Shown here one piece after another: positions 837 to 44,844 of a stretch of DNA of 64,000 nucleotides. The position numbers and the translations under genes are program-made. Source of the DNA: Guillardia theta CCMP2712 (lineage: Eukaryota; Protista; Cryptophyta); contig NW_005434609.1 in NCBI RefSeq assembly GCF_000315625.1, forward strand, positions 124,001-188,000, given 5' to 3'. A model generated the notes under the pieces. It was given only the letters and a program-made list of their open reading frames with translations. It made no database searches and was not told the DNA's origin. Numbering within the stretch: position 1 is the first letter of the stretch; the number at the start of each line of letters is the position of its first letter.

Positions 837-844
837 CAAACTTG

Positions 845-1260: not shown

Positions 1261-1518
1261 GCGAGATATGGTGTAGCCTCACTACTTGCCGAGGGAGCGA
1301 GCGAGGGATAGAGCGAGGAAGCGAGGGAGCGAGCGAGGGATAGAAGAAGGACGGAGGTAGGGAGAGAAGGACACAAGAAGGGAGGGAGGGTAGTGAGAGA
1401 AAAGGCATATGCAAACAAGTGGTTTGCCAAAAAGTTGCATGGAGCAAACTTGTGTTGCCTTCGTTGTTGGAATGATTCGAAGATTCTAATTTTTTTTAAC
1501 TGCAGGAGGAGGAGAAGG

Positions 1519-5242: not shown

Positions 5243-5419
5243 AGAGACCTTGCGCTCCTTGAGATGCTTCTTCTGACCTGTCTGTCTTGCTGATGCTGGT
5301 TGACTGCTGTCGGAGCAACTTGTCTCTTTGAAGTCTCGTATTCTTTCATTGTGCTTTACGTTGATTTACATGATACACTCGCTGATACTAAAGAATAGCA
5401 AAGCAGAAAGGGAAAGGAA

Positions 5420-18559: not shown

Positions 18560-19432
18560 ATGAACATAGCTCGGTTGTTCATCCTAGCATGCTACCTTGA
18601 CCTCACGTGTTCTCTTCAGTCCTTGATCGGTGGCAGCATATCATGGATTGTAAACACAAACTTCACTCGTGATATCGCCTCTAGAAATGTCATATTCAGG
18701 ATCGATGCGACTTTTGTTCTCCCTCAAAACTCGCAATGTAAATTTGCGGAAAACAGTCAGGTCGATTGCTCTGCATACGACATGGCAATACCCGATTGTC
18801 CTGCAAATGGGAACTGTGGGATTGCAGAAAATTTCGGAGTCCTGTGTATTGCACAGCTGGTGCCGCAAGGGGCTGGTGGGATGAAGTCAAAGTACACGAG
18901 CAACAGCTCTCAGTGCGCGTCAGACGCCACCAGTGATATCATCGGATGTTCACCAGGCACTTCATGCAGTAGCAAGATAGGCAAATCCAACACTTTAATC
19001 TTGACCGACATCTGGAACGAGCCAAACCTGCCTCTGTCCTCAGCCTATGCTCCGAATGGGGTAAGCATGTTGAAAGGCTACATGGAGCATACTGTTCAAG
19101 TTGATGAGGACGTCGTCGCTCTCGTCGCTTGGCTTGCTCCCAGGAAAGGGTTCGACAATCTAGATCAGTCGACGGGGCTGTTGCTCAACGGTTGTTCTAC
19201 CAACTCCCCGCCATGTCTTGCGAATGAGTGCAGCCTTTGGCGGGTACCGTTACCGAATGCGTATGGATATGGAGGAGCAGCTTTTTACGAGGACTCATCG
19301 TCCATCAATGATCTTTACTGGCGAAACTTTTTCTTTGAGTGCTCCCCTGCTCTGCCAGGCGTGAACTGCCTTCGAGGAGCTTCCCCAGCACTTGAAACAT
19401 TTGTTCCTCTCTGCTCCAAACTGTATAGCTCG

Positions 19433-19465
<33 letters not shown>

Positions 19466-22108
19466 CCATACAACTCCTCAACATCTAACACATCACAGAC
19501 ATCAGACACAACCAGCACATCTTACACATCAAACATGCCGACATCACAAGCATCAAACGCATTACACAGTGACATGTGGCTTTGCGATGTTTCTGGAATA
19601 GTCAATTGGCATTCTCCTATTGCTCTGTTCCCGGATGTCATCGCTGTTGCAACAGGAGCAGCCATTGAGGAGAACCCATTCAAGTACAAGTCTATTGATG
19701 GAGGTTCGATCAGTGCGCCATATGCTACAATGGAGTTTCACTCGTATGACTTAGATGGGCATCTCATGACGCAGTATTCCCCAAATCTGGTCGAAGAAAT
19801 CCTCGCAAAGGATCGAAAGTACGGCCGCGGTGTTCCTTACTCAATCATGGACACGGCAACGTGTAGATTTAATGACACTCAGAGCTTCCGAGTGGATTGC
19901 ATTGCTACCACAAGCTATCTTGACTCTAGCGACTGGAAACTTGCGAATACTTCCACCGGATGCTACATCTTCAATGGCTCCAGCAATACGAGCAATCACA
20001 TCAAACCTGATTTCTCCTTCCAAGATTTCAAAGGATTGAAAGTTTTCCCCTTCTTCACCCAGCATGTGATGGATACCATTGACTTCCCCAATGCATCTGA
20101 CTACACTCTTAATTGGAACTCTTCCACGGGTCAAGCCGCCGTTCAGAACGTCTTCTCACTTTACCCTTGCAATGCAGGGAGCAGCAATCAACCTCCAATG
20201 TTTGTTTCTGGATTCCCTTCACTCACAGAGCAAGTAACCAAAGTCTATAACCTCAGCATCGTGGACACGCATGCCATCAAGCTGTATGCAGCAGACTTTG
20301 TTCCAGGCTCTCGCACCCTTACAAGCAGCCAAGTCGTTGTAGATTATTATCCTGGGTTTCGGGCTAAACCTAGTGATCTCGTTCTTGTGCATTCTAGCCC
20401 GGGACTGGCAGAGTACGAGTACACGTTCCGCCCTTTGGATCACCTGGATTTGGTTGGAAATGGCCAACCCTCAAAGTTCAGGCAGAACGTGACAGTGATT
20501 TGTTTTGCGGCATATGATCTGGATGTGAACGGCAAGTACATGACCAACGCAACCTCCAAGACTTGTCCTTCGATGCCTCTCTGCATCAAAATTCACCTTT
20601 ATGTTCCTGAGTATCATGTGATCCTCTCTTTTCATTGATCGAGACTCTGTGTCTGATGTTTCATCCAGGATTGTTTCTTGTTCTATCCCAACATTCAGTG
20701 TTGGAACACCGTCGCCGAAACCGTGCCGGCAATGGTCGACCACGAGAAACTCCCTCCGAGGATGTTTAAACCCTCTGACTGGAGCTCCGTCCTGCTGCCA
20801 GAGCAGCCGAAGATAGTCTATGCTCGAGTCAACATCAACTTTCGTTACACGTTTGTCGCGCTGGTACGCAGCAGTTCTTCTCTGTGACATCAAACAGCGC
20901 TGACTGCCTGCAGATGCCAAATCCGAACCAGAACCAGATAGAGCTCTTCATCTCCAGCCCAACCTCAGCCAACCCTCCTGGGATGAAGTTCTTGCAGAGG
21001 TCCTGCGTCAACTTCGAGCAGAACTGGACATCGTGTCGAGGACAGACAGACCTTGTCTTTCGTAGCGGCATCAATGTTGATTATCCCTCATCGTCCTGCG
21101 GCAGGTTTGACGGCACCATTGAATGGTTCCCCCAGCCCTTCAATGCTGGCAAGTCTTACCAGGTCTGTGCGACCCCCATGGTCTCATCGCATTCGTGCTT
21201 GAACACTTGGCTGAACCAGCAGCGTTGCATCGTCATCCAAGTGATGGACGTGCGGGTGAGGTGGGGAGGATTCTTTCAGGACCATTACCTGTCAGACTTC
21301 ACAACATCCGCGTTCATCGGCTGCACCAAGAAGTGGAACATCACTGTGCAGAACCTCAACATGGACAGCACGGGCCCAAATTATCCCTTGTTGGTTTACC
21401 TCCAAAACATCTCGATCGACGCCAAGGATGCCGTGAAGGAAGGCCCTGCCTACACGTTCTCATGGACTCCGACGTTTGACATGGCGGGAAAGTCGCTGGA
21501 CATGTGTTTTGCGGCGATCGACACACTTGGGATCCTGGGGAACGCAAGGCCGCTGCTGTGCAAGGGAGGGGGGAACAACTTGTATGGGTGTACAACAGAC
21601 TTTGACTGTCCGGATGGTGTTTGCCAGAGTGCCTGCATCCACCTACGAGTTCAGAAGTGTCAATATTGCATTCAAACCATGACGAGCTTGGAGCTGCTGG
21701 CTGACACGATCCAGCCCAGGACTGACTGGATGAGATTATGGGCGTTGAATTCTTACCAAGGGAAGACTTATGCAGCGGGGAACATCGTCGGGATTCAATT
21801 CCTTCCGCAACTTTATCCCCAGATAAGTATCGACGATCCTGGTTTCATCACGCCTACTGCCTACGATCAAGGTCGAGTCCTCTCATTCGGCGTGTTGTAC
21901 CGCCCTGGTCTTGATCAGTCCATCGCTGACTTGGCCGTGAGGTAAGTCATTGCTATGTTGTAAGTCATATGTGACTGACGTTGTTGTGAACAGATTCAGG
22001 ACAACCGTGAAAGCGATTCTTACTTTGAATCCTGACATAGAAGCAAGCATGCTCGTCATTCCAGCCAACCAACTCCTCTGTCTGCAGCCGTGTTCTACGT
22101 GGTACTGA
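18560..22108 (+). CDS. Large secreted Cys-rich modular protein with Ig-like repeats and C-terminal LysM-like domain(s); about 4 exons
   Basis: Signal peptide MNIARLFILACYLDLTCS; introns at about 20612-20668, 20863-20913 and 21942-21993. The C-terminus DQSIADLAVR|FRTTVKAILTLNPDI...IPANQLLCLQPC matches the LysM pattern. Poly-Ser encoded by (TCA)n at about 19432-19464. Confidence 0.75.
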
Positions 22109-24644: not shown

Positions 24645-24785
24645 CACAAGAGTGAGAACAAACACGAGCTGGTCAATCATCGATTTGACATCAGATTCAA
24701 CGGCAGCAGTCTCTGATTTCACCGCCTCCCCTCTGCCTGTACCTCTCAGCTCGCCTCCCTCCTTGACCCCACGTCGTTCTCAGCT

Positions 24786-27700
24786 CTACGTTGACACCCA
24801 GGTGTAGTCCGGCGGGTTGGTCATGCCGTACACGCTCCTGCCCCAGCAGTGCGCCCGATAGTCCAGCCCGATGCCGCAGGAGTGGAACAGCCCTGACACG
24901 ACGCCTCGCCAGGAGGGTACATCCTGTCAACAGCTTGTCAAACTCGGCAAGCGTCAGCCGCCTCCCACTCACCTGGGGGTAGCCGAGAGCCCCGTCCTGG
25001 TTCGATCCCCAGCAGCGGAGAGCTCCCGACGAGGAGACGCCGCAAGTGTGGAAGCGACCGACCGCCAGGTTGCTCCATGAGGACACGTCTTTGGGGACGG
25101 CGGTGGCGCCGTACATGGTCGACCCCCAGCAGAGCGCTTGACCGCTCGCGAGGATGCCGCAGGAGTGGTAGTGCCCAGCTGACGTCATCCTCCAGCTGAC
25201 GGAGCCTGTCTGAGGCGGGACCGCGGACTGGCCGTAGAGGTTGTCACCCCAGCACAGGGCCTCCCCGTCGGTCGTCACGCCGCACGAGTGGAACTGCCCA
25301 GCTGAGATCTGCTTCCACGTCCTGCCTGGGGGAGGAGAGCTCTGCTTGTACGAGTCGTCGCCCCAGCAGAGTGCCAGCTCGTTCATGATCCCGCACGAGT
25401 GGTGGTAGCCAGCTGAGCTGGAGATGGCGGTCCACCTCATGGTCGTGTTGAACACGATCGGGACCTTGGTTTGCTGCGCGTAGTCCTGGCCCCAGCAGTA
25501 AGCTGAGAAGTTGCTGGCGATGCCGCAGGTGAAGAAGCTCCCAGCTGAGATATGGTTCCACGTTATGTTCTTGCGAACCTGCAGGGCTACTCCGAACTCC
25601 TCGATCGTCTGCTCATCGTGTATGACGGACGTTTGCCTGCGGAAAGTGATCAGTCAGCAACAAGTCGAGGCAGCGGGAGAGGAGGAGGGCTTACCCGAAG
25701 TCGTCGAACCCCCAGCACTCCGCCCATCCCCCCGTCGTGATGCCGCATGTGTGAAAGCCGCCTGTGCTCAACCCGAAGGAGCTCCAGCAGTCGCTGATTG
25801 ACGAAGAGCCTCTTGTGCTGGTATTGGTTCCCAACGGGCAGCTCACGCAGCCCGTTGACCTCGTCTGATCCTGGTACTTCCCGTAGTCACACTGCAGGCA
25901 CAGGTCTTGGGAGCCGAGACTCAGGCCTGTCTTGCTGTAAGTCCCCGTGGGGCAGAAATCGAAGCACATGTCTTGAACGCTGGCTCCTATCCCAGCAGTT
26001 CCCCTCCCCACCGGGCAGTTCAAGCAGCTGCAGTCTGACCTGCAGTCCCCGGACGACTGGGCGCAGTACTGGAACGTGTCCTGAGGACAGGGGGTGCAAG
26101 GACTGTACTGGTCAGGGCTGATGTAGCCGAGGGGGCAGAGCGAGCGGATGTAGAGAGGATATGAAGCGATGAAGCTGTTGCTTACACCGACATTGGCGGT
26201 GAACATCTCGACTGTTGAGTTCTCAGAGAGGGTCAACTGCTGATCGGTGTAAAGGATCCAGCTAGTGCTGTTGTAGACGGGCGTCGAGGTGCTCCCGGTG
26301 CTGTAGGAGACTGCGGGCCAGCCAGCGGCGCCAGTCGTTACCCTGTAGTAGGTCAAAGAGGACGGGGAGGAAGGTATGATTCGAAAGGTAGGGTTGGACG
26401 GACAGACTCCAACGTTGAAGACAGTCGGGTACTGAAACCCATCGGTGACGTCAAACGGGAGTAGATTGGTCTTGCAGTCCATGGCCTCCGTGTTGCAGAT
26501 GACTTGTAGCGTGGGAGATACCTCCTGAATGACGATGAGGCTATGGCTGATCGTAGAGTTCTCGAGGTTTGGAGCGACAGCACACCAGGAAACGTTTACG
26601 GTCTTCGTAACTGTCACTGTCTGCCCTTGACGCAACCAAGTTCCCTTGAGGAAGGGATTAGACCCGTCAAGAGTGTAGAAGACTTTGACGGTGTCGAAGG
26701 AGACGGAGAAGTTGAACTGGACTGGGGAGATGAAAGCTCCGTTGAGGAAGGTCGAGTTGGCAGGGTCGGTGACTAGCACGGGACTTTCCGTCTGCAACCT
26801 GTAGTAGGCAACGGTGACGTTGCTGTCAGCCAGTGTGCCGGACTGAGAGTATGCCGTTAGGAAAGTCCTGGATCCCCAGCCGATGGAAGAGTTGAGGATG
26901 ACGTTGCTAGTGAAGAGAGTTGCCCTTGCGGGCCACTCGTTTGCGTAACACTCTCGCACATCCCTGTAAGTCACCACACAGGTTGAGTTCTCCCCGCATG
27001 TCACGTTGTCAAATTCTCCTTCGCACGCCACTCCGCTCACGAGGCCCCCGACGCACTTTCCGAGGCAAGAAGGGTAGCAGGCGTCAGCTGGGATTTGCAG
27101 CTCCTCGCCTATCGAGATCGTTCGCAGGGAAGGAAACTCGTCAAACTTGCATAGGGTGAAGTACGTCTGAGCGTCTGGGGTCAAACTCTGCAGGGAGAGG
27201 CTGACAGCGTCTATGTAGAGCCCTTGAGCTGGGGTGACCTCTGGGGGGCTGACCTGGAGGTTGTAAGTGGCCTGCACGACCTGACTCGGGTTGGAACCGG
27301 GGATGGTGACGTAAGCAGTGACGTTGCCAGACTGCACGAGGCGGATGGGAGCTTGATAGACGAGGAAGGGCTGAGAGGTCGACGTGGCAAATTGACCGTC
27401 GAGCTCGACGCGATACCTGATCTCAGCATCGGGAGAAAAGGACTCGATGGTGACGAGGAGCGGGGAGATGAAGTACTTCCGAGACGTGTAGAGAGGAGAG
27501 ATGACTGGAGGGACGGACTGAACGTACAGTAGCTGCTGCGTCTCGTTGAGACGGTAACCCCACTTGTACGACGTGGCGACCACTTGAGCGTTCTGTGTGA
27601 CGTTGAAAGGGCCAGTGTAAGTCAGTCCAGAAACCTCGAGGCTGGAGAAGGTCTCGAACGCCGGAGTGGTTCCGTCCAAGGAGAAGAAGACGACGATGTC

Positions 27701-30700
27701 AGGGTCGACTGTCTCAAAGGTGACCTCGACGAACGTCAAGTACTCCAGCAAGGTCTTGCTCGATGACCGCGTACCCCGCAGCACGATCCTTGGTGAAGGA
27801 GCTACAGGCGTCGAGGGGTCGAGGCAGTGGAAGTCTCCCACCCTGTCTCGGAACTTCCCGCATCCTCCGTTGTCACCCTGGTAGCAGACGGTAGACACGC
27901 CGCAAGAGCACGTTGAAACGCAGCAGTCGCCGCTGTCAAACCCGCACTCGGGGTTGTTGTTGACAGCGTCGCAGTAGCCGTCGGCGTACCAGTCAGCACG
28001 GCAGGGGACGGCGATGAAGGAGGAGGAGAGCTGCTTGTCTTGCTCCCACGTCCCATCCTGCTTGAACCTCCAGTCCGCACAGGTCTGCGTGAGCCCGACA
28101 GGGTTGCAAGGAGGGTCCGAGCACTGAGCGCCTGTGAAGCGGATCGGAGGGCAGACCTCGCAGTAGGAGCCCTTCCCTTGCGGCTGAACCCTACAGGAGC
28201 CTCCCGAGGGTGTCATGTAGCAATCAGCCGCAATGCACTGGAAGCCAGCTTCTATCAGACACTGAGCGTTACAGCCATCGCCGTTGATGTTATTCATGTC
28301 ATCACAAGCCTCCTTCCCTGCTATGATCCCGTCCCCACAGTTGGTGCTGCACAGTCCGTTGTCAGCACACACATACCCGCTCTCCAGCCTGCAGAACTGG
28401 TCGCATCCGTCGCCTGACTTGGTGTTCCCGTCATCACACTGCTCAGCTGCAACTCGAACGCCATCAGCGCAGATCCCGTAGCAGAGGCTGGTCGTGTGGT
28501 TGGTGACGTGCAGGTTGTCCGCGCAGATCCAGCCGCTCTCCACCAGACAGGAGGAGCTACATCCGTCTCCATCGCGAGTGTTGCCATCATCACAGTCCTC
28601 CTGCTGGACTCGCACGCCATCACCGCAGACAGCCTCGCACCTTCCTCCGAGCAACCGATCGTGATCGTCGTACAAGCACACGAAGCCCTGCTCGAGCTTG
28701 CATTCTGACGTGCATCCGTCGCCCGCCGGGTCACTCCACATCCCGTCATCGCACTCCTCGTAGCCTGACACTCTCACCCCGTCCCCGCACAAGGGTGAAC
28801 ACTCGTCCTTGTATCCTCCGTCAGCTTGTATGCAGATCCATCCCACCTCGACCGCGCACATGTCTGAGCAGCCGTCACCGGAGATTGTGTTGTTGTCATC
28901 GCACTGTTCCGATGAGGACCGCACTCCGTCCCCGCATACGCTCTTGCACTTGTCATCGTCAGGAAGGTCGACAAGGGAGATGTTGGCTGACTGAAAGAAC
29001 GCTTCTGAAGGAGACAGCACGTCTGTGTAGATCAGGCCGCAAATCTTCTCGGAGTTTCCATAGGTGGGGTTGCAAACTCCAGACAGGCAGATCGCCGTTG
29101 TATTCAGGCACACATCACCGCCCTCAACGCACGTCCACACACTTGCAGAATTTGACAAGCAGCAAGTCCCCGTCGCGATCACGTTCAGACAGCTTCCAGG
29201 TGTGATGGTCATGTTCGCAAACGCCCCTCTCCCTCCTTGCGCACAGTAGAAGCCGACCTCCTCCTGACAGCTCGAGCTGCATCCGTCCATGCTGCGAGTG
29301 TTGCTGTCGTCGCATCTCTCCTTCAACGTCCGGATCCCGTCACCGCACTTGGCCGAGCAGACCGAGCGAGGGCTCTGCTGATCCCCAGCAGCAAGGGGGT
29401 CAGAGTCGCACTCCCACCCGAGAGATCTCTCAACCCGACAGGTCGAGCTGCAGCCATCGTGGTCGACCGCATTCCCGTCGTCGCACTCGTTGAGGTTATT
29501 CATCGGGGAGATGTAGCCCTGGTAGGAGAGCAACAGCCCGTCGCCACATGTCTCATTACAGACGCTCCTTTGGCCGCTGACGATGCAAGTGAAGTGCTCC
29601 TCGATCGTGCACTTGTCCGAGCATCCGTCGCCGTTGAGCAGGTTCCCGTCGTCGCACTCGTCCATCATGGTCTTGATCCCATCCCCGCAGATCGAGGTGC
29701 AGTTTGTCAGGTCGGCCGAGCACACGAAGTTTGCTTCTAGGGTGCAGTTGGAGCTGCAGCCGTCCCCGCTGATCCTGTTCCCGTCATCGCACTCCTCCCT
29801 CCCTCGAACAAGATGGTCGCCGCACACCGTGATCAGCTCACACCCTGCCCTGCAGTACGACTTCTCTGTCTCAGGGTTCGTCTCGTTGCAGCTCTCCGGG
29901 CAGTACCATCCGCTCTCGATGGTACACACGTCTGAGCAGCCGTCCTTAGTCTCGCATGTCTCGTTTCCGATGATCTCCCGGTCCCCACAGATGGTCGAGC
30001 ACACCGAGTAGAAGGTGTTCACGCACCTGTACCCGAACTCCTCCTGACACGTCGAGTTACAACCATCTCCTCCTACCGTGTTCCCATCGTCGCACGTTTC
30101 ACCGTACACTCTCATCCCATCCCCACACTTGTACCGAGGGTGCCCGTCGCTGTTCGCAACAAACCCGGCCTCCACAGTGCACAACGAGCTACAGCCGTCC
30201 CCTCCCACATAGTTCCCGTCGTCGCACGTCTCCCCACCTGTCATCTTCGAGTCCCCGCAAACTCGAAACGGGACCCTCTCGTCCAGCTGGTCCGTCAGCA
30301 CGAAGGAAGTGCAGACGCTGTACACCGACGTCCTGTCCGTCACGCATCGCAAGCAGATGGAGTTCTCCGACCACAGCCCCACCCCCCCCTCGTCGCACGT
30401 GCTCTGGTTGTCCCGAGCTCGGAAGCAAAAGTCTCGCTCGACCCCGTCGGCCGGCACTCTCCATCGGAACCGCCGCCGGGCCACGTAGCGGTTGACAACT
30501 TCTCTGCCCGACACCACCTGCTGGAGCTCGTGCAGCAGCGGCCCGACGTCTGCCATGTAGTCCGAGTTGGCGCTGGTGAGGAAGATGTCGACGTTGTCCT
30601 CATGGTTCCTGTCCATGGCCGCCAGGGTGAAGTCGAAGAGCGAGTCAGCGAGGACGAGGAACCTTTCGTTGGGGTCCAAGGGGGAGGGGTCGACGAACTG

Positions 30701-33700
30701 AGGCCTGTCGCAGACGTTGATCTCCACAGTCCTAATGCAAGTGTGATGTAGAACTTCGTGAGACCGGAGAGAAGCGTTGGTAGCGACCTCCGAACCTTGA
30801 TAAGAGACGAGGAACTTGGGGAACCAGGAGACGGACGACCAAACTAACGACCTGCTGACCACATTCTTTTGGTTGAGGGTTGGCACAGAGGAGATGGTGA
30901 CTGAGCTGCCGCAAACTTGAAGCTCGTTGAAAATCAAGGGGTCGTCAAGCTGGAGCGAGAACATGTTCTCGGTGATGTAGACATCTGGTGGGCGAGAGCT
31001 CGAGGTGAAGTTGATGTCAAGGTGGAGCTTGTTGAGGGGGAAAGTATTCTTGTCTTCCATGCTCACAGTCAAGATGAAGGTAGAGCCAACCTTGAGGTAG
31101 TACGCGGGGACGGTATCAGCGTCGGAGCAGAGGACTGGAGTAGGGTTGATAAAGTTCGGAGGGAAATTTTCCTGCTGGTAGACCGTGATGGGCTGAGATA
31201 CCACTGAGATGTTCGTTCCCTCGACGGAGAAGGAGAAGAAGACCTTGCCGATGGTACAGAGACTGATCCTGACCATGACCTGATTGAAGGTTGCGACTCC
31301 ATCACTTGCTGTTGTGGCTGAGATCTGATTGACCTGATCGTCCATCGTGATGGACGTACCGTCCTCTTGGAAAGCTTTCGCGGTCACGTGCATGCCCGAG
31401 ACGTTCAGGCAGAAGTCGAGGAAGCAGTTGCGGACAGAGACGCGAAAGTTTGACGTGAAAGGGATCAGGTTGTATCCTTGCAGAGGCTGGTCGATGATGT
31501 CGATGCGATACTTAGGATCTGACAACATCTCTTCCTGCAGGCTCCAAGAAGTGATAGAAAGACACTTCTGACACATGCACGGATAGAAGCAGGCGTTGGA
31601 GGTTGATGGCGAAGGAGGAGAGGAGGAAACGTTGCTGGAGTTGTTCGCACATGTTCCAAGGAGACATTGCAATGCATTGTTCTCACTTGAGATGTAAGAT
31701 CCACAATCTCCACTGGTGCTCAACGTCCGTATCACGTCAACAAACGGGTACTGCGCAACCTGCTCGTACGAGATGTAGAAGTTTGCAACTCCCAGCACGG
31801 TGACGTTTTCGGTGACATGAGTTGATAGTCGACCGTAACTTGAGCAGCACAGGTCGTCATAGAGGTAACTGTGACACGTCATCGCCCCTCGCACCATCGC
31901 TGAAACCTGGACGTCGGACGCCGTGACGACGTTAGAGAACCTGTCCTTGAGAGTCACTTGGAACAAGAATGCAGACAGTTTGTCCATCCTCGTCCAGCTC
32001 AAGTGAATCTGCGACGCTGAGGAAGGAGCAACGGTCACTGTCACGTTGTGGTTCACGGAGCTTGCGTGCGCTAGCGAGAATTGCAGAGTCCAGCTGGAGT
32101 TCGCCTGCTGCATGCTGACACCTGAGAAGGTCACAGAGCCGTTGATCGCTCGAGCTCTACTCAAGACTGTCTGGAACTGACAAGCATGATCGTGTTGACA
32201 GTTGCCGGAGTATAGCGAGAGAACGACAAGGGAGGAGCTGGCCAGCTGCCGGGGGAGGCCAGACGCATTGTTCATCAACAGGACATTGAAGCTCATGGAA
32301 TCGCCTGCCTGAATGTGGCGCGCGGGAGATGAAACGACAAGTCTGTCTACTCCAGGGAGGATTTCAACAGCGAGGCTCCTTCCCCTTATGCAGAACTCCT
32401 GATTGTCCGTGGTGTAACAGCTGATAGCTTCAAGAAAGTAGACGCCGGGTGATCCGACGGTGATGTTGAAAATGCTTGCTCTCCCTCTCAAGAAATCAGC
32501 CGTCACTTGTGTTTGTGCTTCTGTTATGACTGCTGTTGGCTGAGGGTGGAAACTGATATCGTTGGTCCATACGACTGTAACTTTCTCTTCGTATGAAGTC
32601 ACGACATTTCCGAACTGGTCGAGTGCTGAGATAGAGGGTTGCCACGGGAAAGGTTCAGCAGCCAACGCGGACGGTTGAAGTTTGTCAAACACAATCTGAA
32701 GAACGAGTCAGAAGAAAAGCAAACTCACAAGGTTTGAGGCAGCAACTTCGTTCAAAACTAGACAGACAGAGAGACAGAGAGACAGCCAGGCAGGCAGACA
32801 TGGAGTACATCGAAACAATTGAGAAGACCCATCGCTCATGTCAACAACAGACAATCTTGCCATCCACAACCGACGACCCTCTCTCAACTCACTTGAGTCG
32901 GCCATGCGTGTACGTTGACGTCATTCGACTCCGTGCTGACGGATCCGTCGGCAGACGCGAAAATCAGGCGGAAGCCTGCTCCTGGTTTGTTGAGAAAGAT
33001 GTTCCTGAAAGCAACCGTCCGACCGAGCACGGGGAGCTGAAGGTCCCCAGAGAGAAAATTCTGAGAGGAACTCGCGGTTTGCATCCTGTAACTCCCGTAG
33101 AGTGATGACCTGAACTTCAACGGGATGTCACAACGACTGGGACTTGTAATGGTAACGTGCAGGTCGACGTAGAGATAGTTCTCTCTCGCAAGCTCCGTCA
33201 CGTTGAGCCGATGAACACAGCTGAAGTAGGAGAAGCAATCGACGTTTCTCCTCGGCACACAAACTTTGCGACCGCCCATCGACTTCAGCTGGTCGACAAA
33301 GGAAATTCCGTTGATGTCAAACCTGTCAATGTCTCCATCGTACGTAAAGTCAGCCCCAAGGATGCTGATGTCCATGAAAGCAAATTCAAGCTCGTCTAGC
33401 GGCGCGACGAAGTTCCTGTACCTCAACGTCAAAGCGCAACCTGCCATTGTACAGTCTTCCTCAAGATCTTGTTCGAAGATATTCACACCAACTCTCACAG
33501 ACACCGAGCCTCGGTAGTCGTCGAGAGGCCAGCCGTCCGGGCCGTACAGTCCGATCACAGGGTGAGGCAGCAACAGCCCGAGGTCTGCCTCTGCTGCAGG
33601 TTGTTGCAGCACCTTCATCGCACTGAGTCTTCCCTCCACCTTGAGAGCATCCGAGGTCACTTCCATCCCCTCCGTCGACGTGAACTTGAGGGACAGGACG

Positions 33701-36700
33701 GCTCTCCTTGCGATGAGAAGGTCAGAAAACGTTGCGACCCCGCCGATAGCTGCCTCCACCGTGCGCCCCAGCAAGGATATCGTCTCGTTGCCAGCGTTGA
33801 CTACTGACACGGCGATTTGTCCCTTGTAAGTCCTTGCGAGGTTTCCGAACTTGTCCAACACCAAGACCAGCGGCTGCACCACGAACGCCTGGTTCTCGAT
33901 CGCGTTGGAGGGAGGTCTCGTCAACTCCAGCTGGCCGTCAGATGGACCATGGATGTTTGCGGGCACCACCTCGAAGGGGGCAGTTGTCAAAGTCACGCCC
34001 TCGCACATGAACTGCAGCAGGTTGTAGGGAGCCGCCTTGGTCGTGTAGAGCCCGGGGAACTCCACTCGTCCAGCTGAAGATCTCCTGGGGTACTCGATCG
34101 ATGGGGAGTCAGCTGAGTCGGTTCCGTTGGAGGAGAGGAAGAGAGACTGTGGGTACAGGACGAGGCTGGCGGAGACGGTCAAGGGGTCAGAGATCAGGTT
34201 CTCATACCCATCAAACATCGCAACCTTGGGACTCGGTATGATCTCCCTGCCGGCATACTGAAGGTCAAGAATCTGCTGCTCTAGTCTCATATAGCTCAGC
34301 GTGCTGGGCACGACTTGAAACGTCTGAGAGAAAGCTTCCAACATGCTGCTCGCCACCGCAACCTCGTACCGCAGTCTTGACTCGCTCGCCGCCCTGCACA
34401 TCCGCAAGAAGGGGAAGGAGACGCCCTGTCGGACTTCAAAGTCTCCTCCTTCGCAGAGGGAGCTCCCTAGCTCGGCCCTGATGCTGAGTTTGCCCTCCTG
34501 GTCTACACAAGTGTTGTTGTACTTGTCCAAGATGTAGGCAGATACTGAGAAGTAAAATCCGGCCACCACAGTCGAGTTGCAGTCGGACGAGTTCGAGCAT
34601 GTCGGGGAGCCAAGCGTCGACACTGATGGGACAGGGCTGACGGCCAACGTCTTTGGAACCGAACTCAGGACCTTGAAGACTGGTGACTCGAGGTACGTCA
34701 GCTGCCGCCCGACTTTCACGATGAAGTCTAACGAGTAGAAGGGACAAGAGCGGCGAATGGTCAAGTTGTCAAAGTTGGCAACCCCAGCTGAAGAGACCGC
34801 CACGCCCAGCATTCCTTCCACCATCTCACTCTCATTCCAACCTTGAGTGAAGATGAGGCTCGTCGAGCTGGGAAACATGGGCACGTTCGCATCTAGCGAG
34901 GACCCGATGTCGACGGCCCCGAAAGTCCTGAAGGTCATCGAGAACTCTGGCGTCCACTCGACTGTGGGGTCGATAGAGCTCACGTTGACAACCTCTGCGA
35001 TGCAGGGGAAGCCGTTGATGGCGAGTTGACGGCAGACAGGCTGGACGTCGATTGATGACTTGGCTTGAGTGCAGATGCTGTCGATTCGGTTTCTTGTCGT
35101 GATCTCAACCTCGAATCTGAACTGAAGAAAGTCCGACCTGACCACATGAAAACTACGAAGAGAATAGTTGAACGACGAGTAGAACGCTTTTTCTATCTTG
35201 CCCAATACGGTGCGTTGATACGACAGTCGATCGCTGCAAGCATCCTGTAGAGGAAACATCGGTCTGGACGGGTCTGCTTTGATACTCACAACAAGTCCAC
35301 ACATGTTGGGAGGGCTCGTGGCCACGTCAGTCATGGGACCCTCAGAGAGGAGTCGTCTGTTCGTGTTGTTGGACGAATTGCTCATGTCAGACGTCATGTT
35401 GGAGCTATTGACTAGAGATGTCAGCTCACCAGACAAGTTCCTGAAAGTGGACCCAACAATCCCTAGACGCATGCTCTCGATTATTGTAGTTCCATGTCTC
35501 TCCAATCTGAACAGGACGGCAGCCATGTCGGAGAAATGACGAGGCAAGACCAGGGTCAGCCTCATCCACCACCTCAATCCTCCTCCGCACACGCAGCAGA
35601 CGTCTGAAGGCAGGGAGATGTTCGAGGAATAGTTCCGATCGATGAAGGAAAGGAAACTTGTCCCATCGCACCACCCGAACGTCTTGTAGTCGTTGCAAGA
35701 CAGTGGCAGGTGCTCTGACCAGGGGAGTATGTCCTGTTGGATGTCAACACATTCATCATGGAAATTCTCCGCACGAAGGTTCACAGAGACTGAGTTCTGA
35801 TGAAGGGGAATAACGAAGTGATACTGGACGTTGACATCGATCAAGATCCGGAACCTGGACGACATGTCCGGACACGAGTACAGATCGACTTCATCGGAAA
35901 CAGAGGCGAAGAAGGAGAACGTCGCTCCATCGAAGGCGCTTACATCGTGCTGCACCAAGAGATCTCTCGACTGAATACAAGAGGATGCGCAGCCCTCCCA
36001 TGGACCAGTCACAAACGACCGGACGGGAAGTCCGCCGATCATGATGTACTTGACTCTCTCGCCGGGATCGTTGAAGTCAGAGCATACGACGCGAGCGTTC
36101 AAGCTTGCGTGATCCAGCTTTGCTCCGGGAGGCAGGTAACCGCCGATGTCAATGTTGCAGTCCCTATCTCCTTCGCAGACAAACTGCCTGATAGCCGAGA
36201 TCGGGAATTGAGACGATCCCCATGGAAGCTCGGAGACGTTGCTGGCTGGCGGGTCTAACAAGACGACCGTCAAATTGCATCCGTCTTCACAGTACGACTG
36301 GACTTCCCAGTCTGTCTGCACTGAGAGCGCAAGAACAGCCGACGAGGTCAGGTTGGTGTACTCCGCGCTCGCTCCCACCACGTTGAGTGTCAAGTTTGCG
36401 CCCAACACGCTCCCTTGCACATCGGCCGAGACCTCCTGCAGGCTCGTCCCGAAGGCGTCCGAGAAGATACCTGAGATCTTCGCCGTCGAGGTAAGGGGCA
36501 GCTGGGGGGCAGGCGGGTTGGTCACTCTCAGGGAGAAGTCCGTCTGGACCACCACGTTGGTGAGCTCGAGGACGTTCCTGATGGACGCTGAAGTTTGCGG
36601 GGGGTACGCGCCCCCGAAGTAGACGGTGTCGCAGTTGCCGCTGGACGAGTCTGTCTCGCCGAAGACTCCCTGACCCCAGAACGCCGACCGGTTGAAGACT

Positions 36701-39700
36701 TCAGTGATAGGGTGGAAGCCATTGCCTGCCCCCCATGCCCCGTCGTTCTGACTGAGGCAGCACTCCACGTCCACGGAGGAGAAGGGGAAGCGGGAGAAGA
36801 AGTAGTCCCCGGACCTCGTCTCAGTCTTCTTGCGGGCAGGATCATCCGGGTACATCTCTATCACCCACTCCACCTTCCTGCAGTTCTTGTAACCATCGAT
36901 CGTCCCCCTGATCCTGTCCCACAGCGTGCACCTCTGATGGAAGACATAGTGGATCACCAGCACTCTGGCCCTCCCCACAGTCACCGTCTGCTTCCATCCC
37001 CCATGAAGCGTCTGCAGGAAGTTGAGGTTGAAATGAGGCCTGTTTAGATCAGCCACCGTCACGTTGTTGGTGGAGATGAACGGAACTCGTTCTGCGCACT
37101 GTCTTGAGTTGGACACGGCGAAGATGTAGGAAGGGAGAGGAAGGGCCTGCGCAAGGCCTACGACAACGTCCCATGCTGTCGTCGTCAGTGAGGACCGCAG
37201 CAAGACAAAGTCACTCGAGATCACTTGCAGACTATCCGTCTCGATGAGCTGCGTTGATCGCAAGCTTGTCAAAGTGACATTGGTGCCGGCAGTTAGCGGC
37301 ATCGTCGTCACAATCCTGACGTGCAGGACGTTGTCAAACTTTGGCTTCCTAGTCTCCTCACTGATGCTGGCCTGAAGCAGCTGCAGCTTGTGTACATGGA
37401 AGGTGTTGTAACGGCTCTCGCTGGCGTCGTAGACCTTGTCATCAGAAGCGCAGAAGGTTGTCAACATGACGTCCTGATGAAACTCCAGCGCCGAGCTGTA
37501 TGTCTGCACAACCCCAGCTGCTCCTACGATGTACCTCGGCACAGCTCCGAAAGAGCAGGAGAGCTGAACAAAGAGGGGGCCCAGGAAGTTTGTACGATCG
37601 AAGGGTCGGGGGAAGATCGCTACAGTCGGCGGTGGGAAGCGAATGGTGAAGGTCTTGTTGACTGCAACGGATCTGTGAAGGTTTGCCGACTCCACCCAGG
37701 TCTCTACTGTCAGGTTGGTGTGGTTCAGGTGGAAGGGGGAGGAGTACAGCGCAAACTCGCCGCAGGTCGTCGAGCAGACCCTGTAGTAGATGCGAGCGAA
37801 GGGAGTTTGACTCGATAGCGTCACCAGCACGCCCAGCTCGTCGACGGCAGTCAGGAGCTGCCCGTCAGGATCCGGGCTGAACTGAGCTGGGGAGCAGGCT
37901 AGCACGTAGAGGAACTCCTTCCTCGGGCTGGGAGAGGCTCCGGACCTGGTAGAGATGGCTGACAGCAAGACTTGCCCACTCGGCTGCGCCATGGAGGAGT
38001 TGAGAAGGATGGGACCGAGGTACCTCGAGCCCAGCAGGGGATCGCTCCCGTCCAGAGAGAAGAAAGTTTGCGCCCCGTCGAGCTCTTCCACGACCAGGGC
38101 GACGCCCACACTCAGCTCGTACTGAGCTGGGGCAGGCAACGCCGTGGGATCAGCTACAGACACCCTGAGCTGGCTGGACGTGAACCCGAAGGCGGAGGAG
38201 CTCCCAGCCAGCTCATCGTCCTCACTGAGCACCCAGGCCTTGAGGAAGAGGTTGGTGTAGACGATGAAGGGGCTGCTGTAGAGTTGGGGCTGCGATCCGT
38301 TGAGCGAGTAGAAGATGACACATCGCGGGGTGGAGGAGGAGATGGAGATGTTGATGAAGCTGGTGTTCGCTCTCTCGCAATCTCCCGTCGCTCCCTCCAG
38401 CGGGCACGAGGGCAGGATAGCAACTTTCTCGGCTGCGGAGACCGCGAGCTTGCTGTCCCTCGGGGCTCCCCAGCACGAGATGGCACCGGAGACAAGAAGG
38501 CCGCACGAGTGCTCGGAGGAGGCGGAGACGCGGGACCACCTGAGATCTGCACGAGGAGAGACGAGCAGGCGGTTGTCCGTCGTGCTCCCCCAGCAGGAGA
38601 TGGAGCCGTCAAGGGCGACGCCGCATGTGTGGGCAGTGCCACAAGATACTTGCTGCCATCCGTCACGGCGAGGAGGGCTGCTCTGACCCCACTCGTTCCC
38701 TCCCCAGCAGAGGAGAGTCCCGTTGAGCAGCACGCCGCACGAGTGAGATCTACCGGCACAGACGTCTGACCATTTCAAGGAGCTCCCTCCTGGTACGTCC
38801 ACCTGGTTCTCGTCGTATCCCTTCCCTCCCCAGCACAGTGCCGCCCCTCCTACCTCTATCCCACAGGAATGGAAGAATCCGCTCGACATCTTGATCCACA
38901 TCTTCCCAGCTGGAGGAGACGCTTGTAGGTAGGCATTGTCTCCCCAGCAGAGGGCCGTCCTGTCCTCGAGGATGCTGCAAGTGTGCGCTGCTCCTGCTGA
39001 GACCCTCCTCCAGCTCAAGGCTGTGCTCGGGACCGTTGCTTGCCCCATGGCGTTCTCTCCCCAGCAGAAGAGCTTGCCGTCCTCCATCACAGCGCACGTG
39101 TGCTGCTGGCCGAGATCAAAGTCGACAACTGAGCCGTGTTCAAGCACAGCAGGGAGGATCGACGTCTGTCCTGCACTGTTCCTGCCCCAGCAGATCAGCT
39201 TCCCCGAGCTGTCAAGGGCGCAGGTATGATGCCCTCCCGCCTTTACGTCTAGGAGCCTCGTCCCACACCAGACAGTCTGACAGGCCGGCAACCCTCCTCC
39301 CTGGCAGGTCGACGAGTCGGGAGGATAGCCTCCCGTTGGCCAGAACGCTCCAGCTCGGATGCAGAACGGTCTGTCTGCTGGAGTGGGTGCTGGAGGAGAG
39401 GTGACGTTCTGTTCTGGCGCGGGAACGAAGTTGTAGTCTCCGGACAGACTTCGTTCATAACGTGCAGCCTCGTCGGCCGAGTTCGCTTGTCTCCTCAGCT
39501 TGAGACTGTAGACCTGCTGAGAAAAAAAGACGTCATCGCTCAACAGGACGAAGTCCAGCGAGATCGAACTGTTGAGAGGCCAGTCATCGCACTGAGGCCC
39601 GGCAGTGACGTTGTGGTGCACTGGTTGGCTCCAATCGAAGACTCTCGCGTCCATGAGCTGCCAATCCTTCCTGTTGCCGAAGGTGTAGGCGAACGAGTAC

Positions 39701-42700
39701 ATCCCCTTGTTGACTTCGCTGACCGACGAAGGGGAGGAAGTAGCCGCCCAGGTCACGTACTCGTCTTGCTGGGAAGGCAGGGGGACCAGCCGGACCCAGG
39801 AGGTGGGCTGAGCAACGAGAGAAACTTTGATGACCATCTTTTGGCAGCCGAAGGTAATTTCGCTCCCCTCAGTGTCAAGGTCCAATACGAACTCGACATC
39901 TGGCGCATGTACGTCGTTCCCGACCTTGTCCATGGGCTTCAAGACGGAGAGAGCGAGCCGTTGAGACTTTATCGGCAGTGCTGGAGCAGTCGGAACGGGA
40001 GAGGAGGGAGAGGACTGGGGCAACATTGCGATGCAGACAAGACCAGCAATGTCTTGATGTAGAAGAGGGAGGGACTTGAGACTGAGCTGGTTGTAGTCAA
40101 TCACTTTGGAGTTCCTGAAGGAGTCAGAGAAAAGGAAGAGGCTCCTCTCCTGGAGCAGATCGTCAGTCTGCTTCCCACACTGATCGCACGTGAAAGCAGC
40201 GGAATGGTTCCCTCCGAACGAGAACGTCTTCAGCAGCTCCAAGTCTTCAAGACTAGCCCACTTGTAAGGAGCTCCCGTGACGGGATCGTCGGGACAGGAG
40301 TATGAACCGTTGCCCGTCCATCGCCAAGGCAAGCTCAAGACGAAGGCAACTCGGGGATCGAGTTTGTACCTGCAGAACCCTCTACAAGCATCGAAACTTC
40401 GTCCCGCATACCACAAGATCTGCTCGCTCCCTGCCGCAGGTCGAAGGGGAGAGGAGCTTCTGTTGTGTTCCTCCTTGACCACGACCTGAGGGCTGAGCTT
40501 CCACAGGCCGTTCTCGTGCAAGACAACAGGGACCGAGTAGTTCACTCCGTCATGACTGGCGCAGACAGTGACAAGACTGCTCGAGGGCTGCCTCGTCAGG
40601 GTGAACTGTAAGAACAAGTCCCTTCCTACTGCGTCTCCAGCCCTGCAGTAAGGTTCACACGAGCAGAAGAGCTTCGTCCCGCTTGCTGTGTAGAACAGCC
40701 CCTCCTCCCCGTGAGAGCTGCAAGTCGCGTTCCCTTCCACGAGCTTAATCTCGACCTCCGTCGCCTTGAGCAAGAAGGAGGATGGTCTGAAGAGCGTGAG
40801 GATGAAGGGCTGATGGAGGACGACGACTCCGCGCAGCTCTGCTTGCCAGACCCTCCAGGGAACGGGAGGAAGAGGGAGAGGATCTTGACAAGCGTCGCCG
40901 ATCTTGACGCTTCCTGTGAGATCCCTGAAGAACGTGACCTCCTGCTGGGAAGAGAGCTGGACGCTGGTTCTGATGTCTGCAGGATTGCTGTATGACGAGC
41001 TCAACGGCTGCAAGATCGAGAGCTCAAAACCGCCACGAGCGACGTTCAAGGTGACGTTGGAGGAGATCATAGGATCTTTAGAGAAGGTGAAGATAAGCCT
41101 GACTTGAAACGGATCTTGGACGTCGAGGGTTGTCTCCAAGAACAAATGAGAGAAGAACACTTGGCCTTGCTCAACTTTCCGAACCGTGTCCCCCATCACT
41201 GCCACCTGTGTGTTCCAAGACTCGACTTGTACTGAGATTTCACCATCTTCTTCTCTCCTGACGATATTGCCGTAGTCATCGACCAGGGAAACGACGGGCT
41301 GGATGCCGAAAGGAAGCCCGATGAAGACAGTCTGGATGCCGTCGACCTGCTGATCTGTGATGGACGCGGGCAATCGAGAGACGACGAGGCGTGTTGGATC
41401 TCCCGGAGCGACCGTGATGTTCATGGCGAGAGAACGCTGGGAACCTAGCAGGACATCCTCGAACACAACGAGATAACCAATTCCCGCTCGTCTGAAAGAG
41501 AGGTCCAAGAAACTAGCGACTCCCCCGATAGACAGGATGTGGGTTGTCCCGAACATCGACGGAGCCGACTCGCAGGTCAGGTTGTAGGGATCACAAGATT
41601 GCGGCATGCGGCATGTCGACGAGCAGTCGTAACGCACTAGGGAGTAGTTGACATGGACTGACACGTACCTCCTGGATGCGGTCTGAAACCCGTGAAGGTC
41701 GACCAACCTGACAACCAAAGGAGGATTGAACATCGGCCCAGCAGTGAAAGTATTGGAATTCCCCTTGTCTGAGACCAAACTATTCACAGGGAATTCAACT
41801 TCAAACACAAGGGATGAATTCTCCAACGAAATCCCTTCGTACAAGACGGAATACTTGACCGCAAAGTAGCCTGGCTCGCTGACGGTCAGGTCGTTGAAGA
41901 GAAATCGGACGGGACTGCGGGAGTATGGTAGGACACCCTTGCTTCCAGTCAGCAGACGGTCTTGATTGGGCTTCTTAGGAAATCCCTCAAGCGTCAGGTT
42001 GGCAAACCCGCTGTAGCTGAGGTCGACGACGAAGTTTTCGTAGGCATCGAGCAGAGCAATTTCCGTCAAGAACGAGTCCAGCGCTACCTGGTTTACACCC
42101 TGCCCAGCTGTACAAGGAAGAGCGCAGGGTTGCTGCAGAACAGAGATCGAGCGGGGCGAGGAAGAGGTGACTTTGAATACGATTGAATTCAACTCGCCAA
42201 TCAATGGCATACTGAAATGTAAGGAATATTTCCCAACTCGCAAGAGCTTCAGATCGGTGAACTTGACGACTCCAGCTCTGGCCTCAGCTGTGGTTTTCCC
42301 CAGCAAGCTGCAGGAGTCAGTTGACCATGGCGCGACAGTCTGTGTGCTGTTTTCCTTGTAACATGTCAGATTGACACCAGCTTCCCGATGAGACAAGAGA
42401 GCATATTCACTGTTGAGGTCCAACACCTTGACCACTACCTCACTCAAGGCTACTCCCGCCTGTACCTCCACAGTCGGTTGGCTGACAAACTGGACAGAGG
42501 CGACAGGAGGCATGATGTTGAAGCGTGTTGACTCGAGAGCTCCGTCCAGGAACTTATAAGCAAACTTGAGGGTGAAGCCTCTTCCGGGCTTAGAGACGAA
42601 CAGATCCGTGAACGAGGCTACACCGTGCCTAAAAGGGACAGCCAGGGTCCCTTCCAGCGAAGCTCCTGACGGGTTCAGCCCCAAAGATACAGAGACGAGG

Positions 42701-44455
42701 TCGGAGCTGATATCGTCATTGACTAGTCCTTTGTGGTACAGGGCTAGTTGAGGGTTGAAGGGAAAGACCTCGTTGGCGATACAGTCGACGGGTTGTGCGA
42801 CGATGAAAACCTTGTCGACCGAAGGAACTGGATTGGCGACATTGAATCGGCCATCCTTCAGAGAGGACACTCCAAGGACAAGGTCGGCTTGCTGCGGTAG
42901 ATTGATATTATAAGTGTTGCGAATAAACACACAGGAAGGCCTTGAATATCGGTAGTCTCCCACTGAAGCCATAAAACACAACGAGTAAACAACGCTCGCA
43001 TTAGGGAAGAATTCACACCCCACATTCCATTGAACATCGAGATATCTCTGCGAGGTTGGTCCAACAATTGTCTCTCCCTTGCAATCTCCTGATAACAAGT
43101 TCTCCTTTGCGCATCCGTGATAGACCAAGTTTTTGCTGAGAGAAAAGTCGCCCAAGGGCAGGATGGACATGGCAGAGTTGGAGAAGTTGTTGGCAAACAT
43201 GAATCTGACGAAGGGAAGACTGCTCTCTATTTTGCTGCTCCTGCAAAAGAATCTGCTCGTTCCCAAGGGGCAGGCATCCGAGCTAACGCACCTGTACAAC
43301 AACTCACTTCCAGCTGAGGGGGAAATAAGTCATTCACCTGCTATAGAGATGGGAGTCGAGATTGATGTACAGGATTTCATCTGCAGTAGGACAGATTCCT
43401 ACGAAACCCTCACATTCAAAAAGATGTGCATCTGACGGGCTTATGCATTTAGAGACTTGGAAACTGGAGTTGACGCCATCCCAAAACAGCGATTTGGAGC
43501 AATCAAAGAGGATTGTATCTGATATAGTGGTAGGACGAGTTACCAAGAATCCTGAGTATCCGACATTGAGAGGGGAGTCTTGTGAAACACGGATGATGAA
43601 ATCAATGGCACGAGTTCCTGAAAGGGAGTTCACCTCTAGGGATATTTGCAAGAAACAAGGAAACTTGTTGCAAGCATTCTGAGTGAGAACTCTGATTCTA
43701 CCGTCATCACTCAGCATGATGCCTCCAGACGAGTAGTATTGTAATATGGTTGACTGCGAATAGGAGTCTGAAGCAGAGCTGCCTATGGCGTCAGGGAGTA
43801 GAAATGGGTAACGAGTGAGCGTGACTGAAGAATTCTCATCAATGATCAGCTGGTAATCAGATTCGGGATTGAGAGAGAGAAGAGGAGGAATGACTGCAAA
43901 AGGTGATTGAGGGTAAGAATTTTCTGATATGACAACTGTTGTCCTGACATGCCAGTCTGTGCCTTGACTATACACCAGGGAACTGCGGCAACAACCTTGA
44001 AAGAATGCTTGATACTCCCCGGAAGATTGATAGCTGTGGGAAAATGCTAACTTTGAATAAACTAGTCTATCGTCCAACCTGATTATGATGAAGCTGAAAC
44101 GAGACGCATTAGTCTGCAACTTGCAATTTTCTGACATACACGTGTAGATTGATCGACGCACGTCCGACGTGGACCCTTCTGTCACATTCAAAATTGAACC
44201 AGGCCCGCCGTTGATGCAAGAAAGCCATTCATCTCTCAGAGCCTGTACATTTGGTTCTTGCGCAGTTTGTTTGCTCAGCGTGCTTCGCCAAGTGTCCCGT
44301 TCCCATGCTACTTCAAGCGAAAAATGAACGAGAGAGGGATCCATGGGATCTACTCTCCAAGAAAGATCTCCAGAAACGAACCAACAATAACATTGCTTAA
44401 AGAATAAAGACATGATCAAGACATTCAAAGTTACAACAGCATTCAATCGCCGCAT
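24786..44455 (-). CDS. Giant secreted mosaic protein, about 6,439 aa, 5 exons (44455-43338, 43291-32893, 32695-25695, 25636-24973, 24923-24786)
   Basis: All four introns are GT-AG and join the ORFs in frame; total CDS 19,320 nt. Signal peptide; invasin-type Ig-like repeats; two 7-bladed RCC1/BLIP-II-like propellers; chitobiase/Fn3-associated-like repeats (YTLDGSNP); 12 Myxococcus-type Cys-rich repeats; one LNR repeat; ephrin-receptor-like Cys repeats. Confidence 0.85.
28230..30260 (-). repeat. 12 Myxococcus cysteine-rich-type protein repeats (CGDG-x5-7-E-x-CDDGN-x4-DGC) inside the giant gene
   Basis: Counted in the translation of ORF 25691-32692; some copies are degenerate. Confidence 0.85.
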
Positions 44456-44844
44456 GGTTCCAACAGGGCACGTGAAAGCCACGGACAACAAGCCTTTGCT
44501 CTGGCTGGCCCACAGTTACAGGACCGTTCAGCTCCTACCCTGCTGTCGACCAACGGATGTAGCAGAGGCTTGGCTACTCTCAGGCGTCTTCCTCCTCCTC
44601 CTCCCTACCGCCTGATCCTCTGCAGCAGAGCCTCCCTCGTTGACAGCGCCATCTTCGCTTCAAGAGGCATAACCGTTACGGGTACTCGTAACCGCTAGTC
44701 AAAAGTACCAATTCCACCCACCCCCTGATTTTTCTGTCTGATCGAAGGAAAAATGGGGGTGAAGACCTGGCACAGGGCAAAGGGGGTGGTGGAAGGAATG
44801 CCGTTGTGCAAAGAAAGGGATTCAGACGAAAGATAATGACAGAC

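Follow-up and report, generated by a model that had tools for sequence, protein, structure and literature searches.

A five-exon gene of Guillardia theta for a predicted secreted modular protein of about 700 kDa

Introduction

Little is understood of the molecular make-up of cryptophyte cell surfaces, that is the periplast and the surface coat. Twelve DUF4215 repeats are carried by the diatom adhesive-trail protein Ca5255, which was found by proteomics (bioRxiv 10.1101/2023.03.06.531300), and two algal surface proteins, FUS1 and MST1 of Chlamydomonas, have a backbone of invasin-like immunoglobulin (Ig) tandems (PMC10602792). Here, a stretch of 64,000 nt of the Guillardia theta CCMP2712 genome (RefSeq assembly GCF_000315625.1, contig NW_005434609.1, positions 124,001 to 188,000; hereafter the window, in whose numbering all positions are given) was analyzed. 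On its minus strand lies a five-exon nuclear gene, real on the evidence below, for a predicted secreted protein of about 700 kDa in which DUF4215 repeats and Ig-like tandems occur in the same coding sequence (CDS).

Results

Gene structure and the Hanusia phi orthologue

Three large minus-strand open reading frames (ORFs; 43334-44491, 32884-43302 and 25691-32692) and a shorter one (24697-25455) were found at the locus. When the four introns proposed in an earlier inspection of the DNA (the sequence-only reading) were excised, a CDS of 19,320 nt coding for 6,439 amino acids (aa) was obtained, with a single stop codon at its end (24786-24788), in agreement with the single CDS of about 6,440 aa that had been claimed. 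All four introns are GT..AG, and the 3′ end of intron 2 is rich in pyrimidines. At approximately 54% GC, chance cannot account for an open frame of 10.4 kb.

The nearest relatives were found in Hanusia phi (Geminigeraceae), a cryptophyte of the sister genus. Its orthologue covers aa 1-372 and 404-6439, is collinear at 69-77% identity, and has like exon boundaries, signal peptide and C-terminus. The Hanusia protein P0013 (UniRef A0A7S0F111, ‘LNR domain-containing protein’, 2,264 aa) was aligned to aa 4164-6439 at 77% identity, passing junctions 3 and 4 and reaching the identical C-terminal end. A member of its 90% cluster, P0148 (4,573 aa), is encoded on the 13,869-nt JGI cDNA contig L002 as one 5′-partial ORF, which matches the other Hanusia fragments at 99.6-99.9% identity and is collinear with aa 1813-6439 (72.6% identity). 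No gap was found between P0148 and the model at junctions 2, 3 and 4, and the C-terminus is shared. Junction 2, marked here by a slash, reads HAWPTQ/IIFEDLQ in P0148 and HAWPTQ/IVFDKLQ in the model. The evidence bridging junction 2 thus comes from a cluster member and not from the exhaustive search of representatives with aa 3840-4640, in which no bridging homologue was found (15 weak matches only). Splicing of intron 4, seen in the orthologue mRNA, completes blade 7 of propeller 2.

Two further Hanusia ORFs carry consecutive numbers in one EukProt set. P0147 (AAC.2, 372 aa) corresponds to exon 1 at 71% identity, with its start Met, signal peptide and ORF-end codon all as in exon 1 of the Guillardia gene. 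P0001 (AAC.3, 3,436 aa) corresponds to exon 2, its first residue being the Met that aligns with aa 404; its match ends exactly after HAWPTQ and is followed by 16 unrelated residues starting V-S, which fits a retained GTnAGy intron. The retained form in P0001 together with the spliced form in P0148 shows that intron 2 lies at the identical position in Hanusia and is spliced there. Exact look-up of P0001 and P0013 in the contig collections gave no record.

These findings show the structure of the gene with the exception of splice 1. The four canonical introns of the sequence-only reading were therefore borne out in orthologue mRNA at junctions 2, 3 and 4, whereas junction 1 was deduced from the features given in the Discussion.

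Two side observations concern the introns. A CT-rich low-complexity tract (ctgtctctct..) lies within intron 2 at 32756-32804 and was skipped as a repeat during read mapping. Without removal of intron 4, the reading frame of exon 4 would continue to 24697 and give another C-terminus; the spliced form is the one present in the orthologue mRNA.

Metagenomic homologues

Homologues were also found in three metagenomic contigs (P0014 on L001, P0015 and P0016), at 35-40% identity and in collinear order up to the final residue. What they have in common with the protein is its C-terminal half, with the DUF4215 array, the Fn3_assoc/CHB_HEX_C modules, the ephrin-like repeats and the RCC1_2 propeller; they differ in that this part is intron-less, and the contigs end before the N-terminal halves. 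Contig L001 (1-9035, JGI sample 3300034095, GC 57%) begins within the homologue, which is 40% identical to and collinear with aa 4485-6438 and has the same C-terminal residue position. Being intron-less, it further backs junctions 3 and 4. The downstream flank of L001 is poor in long ORFs. Its source may be another eukaryote, and the presence of this homologue indicates that the family reaches beyond the two Geminigeraceae genera. The full architecture was seen only in Hanusia.

No near-identical protein was present in any protein collection searched, and the locus seems to be missing from the annotated protein sets among them. The Hanusia orthologue exists as fragments only, under automatic names, and none of these entries is characterized. 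The earlier judgment that the protein was probably uncharacterized was upheld, since all its close relatives are Hanusia entries bearing no name or an automatic one, and the architecture was not found in the literature.

Conservation along the coding sequence

Identity to Hanusia was 72% overall and even along the length, with few indels. By the Nei-Gojobori method against L002, dN (nonsynonymous divergence) was 0.17 and dS (synonymous divergence) approximately 1.3, which is near saturation, giving a ratio of about 0.13. The ratio was 0.07-0.23 in every region, the orphan regions included, indicating a functional coding sequence along the whole length. About 2,400 aa (37%) had no known match, yet they are under purifying selection. 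The motifs GDLSW, GCCR and RRLL noted in the sequence-only reading, as well as its CC.CGGG motif (DVCCVCGGG), were all present and invariant in Hanusia.

A decaying or non-functional gene, with an ORF open by chance or of recent origin, would agree with the near absence of RNA in Guillardia and with the lack of a matching annotated protein in the collections searched. However, the 19.3-kb CDS has no internal stop and very few indels relative to Hanusia, the low dN/dS holds throughout, and the orthologue mRNA is spliced, so that this explanation is effectively refuted.

Domain composition

Pfam scans and motif counts reproduced the domain order given in the sequence-only reading (Table 1), including two propellers of seven blades each and 12 CGDG/CDDGN repeats. 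For the RCC1-like propellers (PF13540, PF25390), RCC1_2 scored 138.1 bits in exon 2 and 108.4 bits in exon 4 (cut-off 22), and WD40_RLD on the propellers remained under its whole-domain cut-off of 150. DUF4215 (PF13948) scored 197.7 bits against 27 over 11 stretches, with 12 CGDG..C(D/E)D motifs by count; a Cys-rich insert of approximately 100 aa follows repeat 7. In two blocks, CHB_HEX_C_1 (PF13290) gave 40.4-67.9 bits (cut-off 22) and Fn3_assoc (PF13287) gave 31.3-63.2 bits (cut-off 23), and Ephrin_rec_like (PF07699) gave 51.8 bits against 23.1 in 2 stretches. The module identities proposed earlier thus exceeded their cut-offs for RCC1_2, DUF4215, CHB_HEX_C/Fn3_assoc and the ephrin-like repeats. 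In contrast, LNR/Notch (PF00066) was weak and below threshold, with 19.6 bits against 21.2 (E 0.0013, aa 5404-5430). No RTX or type I secretion family was found in the Pfam scans of the protein.

The only family match of the head, in Guillardia and Hanusia alike, was SIBA-E_N (PF24907) at aa 143-176, below threshold with 20 bits against 28.1 (profile positions 84-118/119). Otherwise nothing above noise was obtained for the head and orphan region C in Pfam (E<=1), sequence and profile searches of the PDB, and Atlas feature searches, and no Pfam (E<=1), PDB or ESM Atlas match was found for orphan region A and the orphan center. An AlphaFold2 model of the head (aa 1-372, 2-sequence alignment) had a predicted local distance difference test score (pLDDT) of 35 and was unusable.

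Table 1. Features of the gene and its product in window coordinates, with the Hanusia phi records used.
Feature	Position	Strand	Remarks
Whole gene, 5 exons	24786..44455	-	44455-43338, 43291-32893, 32695-25695, 25636-24973, 24923-24786
Signal peptide, aa 1 to about 25	44381..44455	-	MRR n-region and hydrophobic core; predicted
Head, aa 26-527, GDLSW and GCCR, Cys-containing, predicted beta-rich	42829..44380	-	orphan; split by intron 1
Intron 1, 46 nt, GTGAAT..ACAG, phase 2	43292..43337	-	splice inferred
Ig-like block 1, aa 528-1125, about 5-6 repeats	41035..42828	-	AlphaFold2, Foldseek, repeat hidden Markov model
Orphan region A, aa 1126-1715	39265..41034	-	52-82% identity to Hanusia per 50-aa window
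RCC1_2 propeller 1, aa 1716-1995, 7 H(T/S)C..CWG blades	38425..39264	-	Pfam, 138 bits
CHB_HEX_C_1/Fn3_assoc block A, aa 2005-2330	37420..38397	-	Pfam
Orphan center, aa 2335-3149, DVCCVCGGG; sequon-rich, poorly conserved linker with RRLL	34963..37407	-	dN/dS 0.17
Ig-like block 2, aa 3150-4165, about 9 repeats	31718..34962	-	split by intron 2
Intron 2, 197 nt, GTGAGT..TTCAG, phase 0, CT-rich tract	32696..32892	-	spliced in orthologue mRNA P0148/L002
Orphan region C, aa 4166-4645	30278..31717	-	last ~200 aa: distant metagenomic relatives
12 DUF4215 (Myxococcus cysteine-rich) repeats, aa 4650-5335	28208..30265	-	Pfam, 197.7 bits
LNR-like module, aa 5404-5431	27920..28003	-	Pfam, 19.6 bits, below cut-off
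CHB_HEX_C_1/Fn3_assoc block B, aa 5480-6010	26183..27775	-	Pfam
Ephrin_rec_like Cys repeats, aa 6015-6145	25778..26170	-	Pfam, 51.8 bits
RCC1_2 propeller 2, aa 6148-6439, 7 blades, over exons 3-5	24789..25771	-	Pfam, blade count
Intron 3, 58 nt, GT..AG	25637..25694	-	inside propeller 2; junction confirmed by Hanusia mRNA
Intron 4, 49 nt, GT..AG	24924..24972	-	inside propeller 2; junction confirmed by Hanusia mRNA
Hanusia phi records			UniRef A0A7S0F111; EukProt EP00960 P067810/P067811 (P0147/P0001); JGI contig Ga0186122_100023

Ig-like repeats

The regions with Ig-like repeats matched no Pfam family at E<=1, Big_1 included, and membership of the repeats in Big_1 is not supported. Their relatives by sequence, at about 25-35% identity, are large bacterial proteins, one of them labeled adhesin/invasin; the matched parts of these proteins scored 25-32 bits for Big_1 against a cut-off of 34.9 and 39.2 bits for Invasin_D3 against 33, and also scored for CarboxypepD_reg. 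An AlphaFold2 model of aa 528-748 (35-sequence alignment) showed two beta-sandwiches at a pLDDT of 87.8. Its top matches in Foldseek were titin Z1Z2, intimin D0-D1 and Robo Ig1-2 (probability 1.00), and SbsC was matched also. One repeat begins exactly at the exon 2/3 junction. A tandem Ig fold of the spacer repeats is supported by the model, so that the earlier assignment to invasin-like Ig repeats stood as to fold and as to relatives bearing Big_1 and Invasin_D3, and not as to a Pfam Big_1 match on the repeats themselves.

Secretion and bulk properties

The N-terminus consists of MRR followed by a hydrophobic core of 14 residues, and both the start Met and the core are kept in the Hanusia protein P0147. 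In a Kyte-Doolittle scan no convincing transmembrane segment was found, the three marginal 19-mers (1.61-1.63) lying in beta-rich regions, and the protein has no C-terminal hydrophobic tail. These predictions agree with the signal peptide, and with the lack of an obvious transmembrane segment or anchor, described in the sequence-only reading. The mature chain was calculated to be approximately 698 kDa with an isoelectric point of 4.8, and it contains 273 Cys and 96 NxS/T sequons compared to about 50 expected. Plastid or periplastid targeting, considered because of aromatic residues after the predicted cleavage site, was rejected; the acidic downstream sequence and the disulfide- and sequon-rich modules make it improbable.

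Neighboring genes and further observations

When the remainder of the window was searched by tblastn for the modules of the protein, nothing reached E<=1e-3. A neighboring secreted gene at 18560-22108 was considered as a candidate for sharing them and was rejected, tblastn being blank and no Pfam family being found in 18560-20638 and 20884-21945. The least conserved stretch of the protein (35350-35440, aa about 2990-3030) showed 38-54% identity to Hanusia, indels, many NxS/T sequons and the invariant RRLL. That RRLL could be a dibasic processing site halving the precursor is speculation.

Discussion

Proposed role

The protein probably acts as a secreted, five-exon-encoded giant that cross-links or adheres in the algal surface coat or extracellular matrix. 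The precursor of 6,439 aa would enter the secretory pathway by its N-terminal signal peptide, and the mature protein of about 700 kDa would be released as an anchorless, acidic, disulfide-rich and probably heavily N-glycosylated chain. Some 15 Ig-like beta-sandwiches and some 9 of Fn3_assoc type, that is about 24 spacers, would form a long, rod-like extender separating the candidate interaction modules, namely the head, the two propellers in mid-protein and at the C-terminus, the 12 DUF4215 repeats, the LNR-like module and the ephrin-like repeats. By these modules the protein may cross-link or adhere to partners in the surface coat or extracellular matrix. As there is no anchor, its binding modules would have to keep it on the surface; otherwise it would be lost from the cell as mucilage or adhesive. 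The adhesin or matrix role is suggested by analogy with proteins of similar build.

Several observations weigh against this reading. Splice 1 is without RNA support, the EukProt Hanusia set holds exons 1 and 2 as separate ORFs, and its exon-2 ORF runs on into intron 2. Of raw Guillardia RNA run X5 about 6% was read, giving 6 reads over 6 kb (29800-35790) with no joints, and the contigs of 13 presumed same-species RNA runs held at most 1% of the words sampled from mid-gene and the 3′ end. Moreover, approximately 37% of the protein is without a recognizable fold, and its working parts may lie there.

The first of these observations would be explained if the locus gave separate products, with exon 1 coding for a secreted protein of approximately 373 aa and the giant ORFs starting at the Met of aa 404 and remaining intracellular. 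AAC.2 and AAC.3 are indeed distinct ORFs in Hanusia, and splice 1 is shown by no read or contig; the metagenome scans for Hanusia sequences gave no contig bridging it. However, AAC.3 also reads into intron 2, which is spliced in the second Hanusia contig, indicating that the AAC.3 record retains introns. Intron 1 has canonical GT..AG sites and, at 46 nt, a length near that of introns 3 and 4, which are confirmed (58 and 49 nt), and if it is left unspliced the exon-1 frame terminates one codon inside it. In addition, the 6,000 aa downstream are Cys- and sequon-rich modules of extracellular type, which would not fold in the cytosol. Separate products are therefore very unlikely. The splice that attaches the signal-peptide exon is probably real, given its canonical sites and typical intron size, the conserved end of the exon-1 ORF, the consecutive numbers of the Hanusia ORFs, which we take as neighboring ORFs on one record, and the lack of another signal peptide before the extracellular module types that follow. 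The EukProt record apparently keeps introns 1 and 2 and so splits the exons into ORFs, whereas the JGI contig is spliced.

As to expression, contigs of the 2011 Guillardia runs X1 and X2 were collinear with the genome and kept intron 2, indicating that these runs are DNA, and no RNA assembly holding the gene was found among the runs searched. The gene is near-silent in the sampled cultures of Guillardia. The lack of expression that the sequence-only reading had named as evidence against itself was thus nearly what was found in this species, whereas the Hanusia orthologue is expressed in culture, where its 13.9-kb cDNA contig was assembled. Expression appears to be conditional, and near-silence in culture together with strong constraint suggests conditional use.

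Such a pattern would also agree with a stage-specific role in cell-cell recognition, that is gamete or life-cycle adhesion in the manner of FUS1, rather than in a constitutive coat. FUS1 serves the adhesion of algal gametes and contains invasin-like Ig tandems, and the profile of the Ig-like repeats gave a weak match to FUS1p (chain 9qs0_A, E 0.0086). However, this match is not significant and reflects the shared Ig fold and no more; FUS1 is membrane-anchored, whereas the Guillardia protein is not, and the orthologue is expressed in Hanusia culture strongly enough for the assembly of its contig. A stage-specific role is accordingly rather unlikely. Similarly doubtful is the reading that the protein founds a lineage-restricted cryptophyte family of non-anchored giants in which new folds within the approximately 2,400 aa of orphan sequence (the head, regions A and C and the center) are the active parts and act at particular life-cycle or environmental transitions, for instance when mates or cells recognize one another or when a resting or palmelloid stage is formed, possibly after a cut at RRLL.

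Binding of bacteria or prey by a secreted or surface lectin-like capture or defense protein was considered because CHB_HEX_C/Fn3_assoc modules occur C-terminally in bacterial chitobiases and hexosaminidases, RCC1_2 propellers are known in secreted bacterial binding proteins, and several of the modules belong to types seen in surface proteins of bacteria. However, the Pfam scans revealed neither a lectin or LysM domain nor any other recognized glycan-binding domain, nothing in the data ties the protein to bacteria, and the ligand is not predictable from the ancestry of the modules. Prey recognition has no specific support and is unlikely. A recent transfer of the whole gene from bacteria was likewise not supported; the gene has introns, its collinear homologues include a cryptophyte orthologue and the metagenomic contigs, and bacterial relatives were found only for single repeat types.

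Overall, a role in the surface coat or extracellular matrix is preferred, and the verified gene model of a conserved protein of 700 kDa, predicted to be secreted, provides a concrete candidate for a component of the cryptophyte surface. It is also a case on which ideas about the assembly of protist extracellular proteins from modules common to bacterial surface proteins can be tested. Annotation of a gene that was not found in the searched protein collections is now possible, with a domain map and with three of four splices backed by orthologue mRNA, and the intron-retaining EukProt record calls for caution in proteome-based studies of giant genes.

Comparison with known systems

In the giant adhesins of bacteria (invasin/intimin Big_1 and Marinomonas MpIBP type), binding modules are likewise projected by an Ig-like tandem. 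In contrast to these, the protein described here is encoded by a spliced eukaryotic gene with a predicted endoplasmic reticulum signal peptide, and it is without an outer-membrane beta-barrel, LysM, an RTX/type I signal or a C-type lectin tip. With its spliceosomal introns and eukaryotic genome it does not belong to the bacterial RTX/type I adhesins.

Among secreted algal proteins, diatom Ca5255 and the Trailins resemble it in being secreted and in some cases very large, but the Trailins consist of CAA domains and repeats rich in proline, threonine and serine, and the diatom proteins have no reported propellers or Ig tandems and no sequence orthology to it. According to PMC10602792, FUS1 and the mastigoneme protein MST1 are, like the Guillardia protein, surface glycoproteins combining tandem invasin-like Ig domains (7-9) with Cys-rich modules; they are far smaller, FUS1 being membrane-bound and MST1 polymerizing via a polyproline II helix, and neither propellers nor DUF4215 repeats are described for them in the text read. 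Dictyostelium SibA-E, which are integrin-beta-like proteins of protist adhesion, resemble it in joining an N-terminal domain to bacterial-type repeats, whereas the Guillardia protein is without VWA, transmembrane segment and cytosolic tail and its SIBA-E_N match is below threshold. It therefore opens no new class of system: giant modular extracellular proteins of adhesion or matrix are a familiar kind in bacteria and protists, represented here by a lineage-specific and uncharacterized member.

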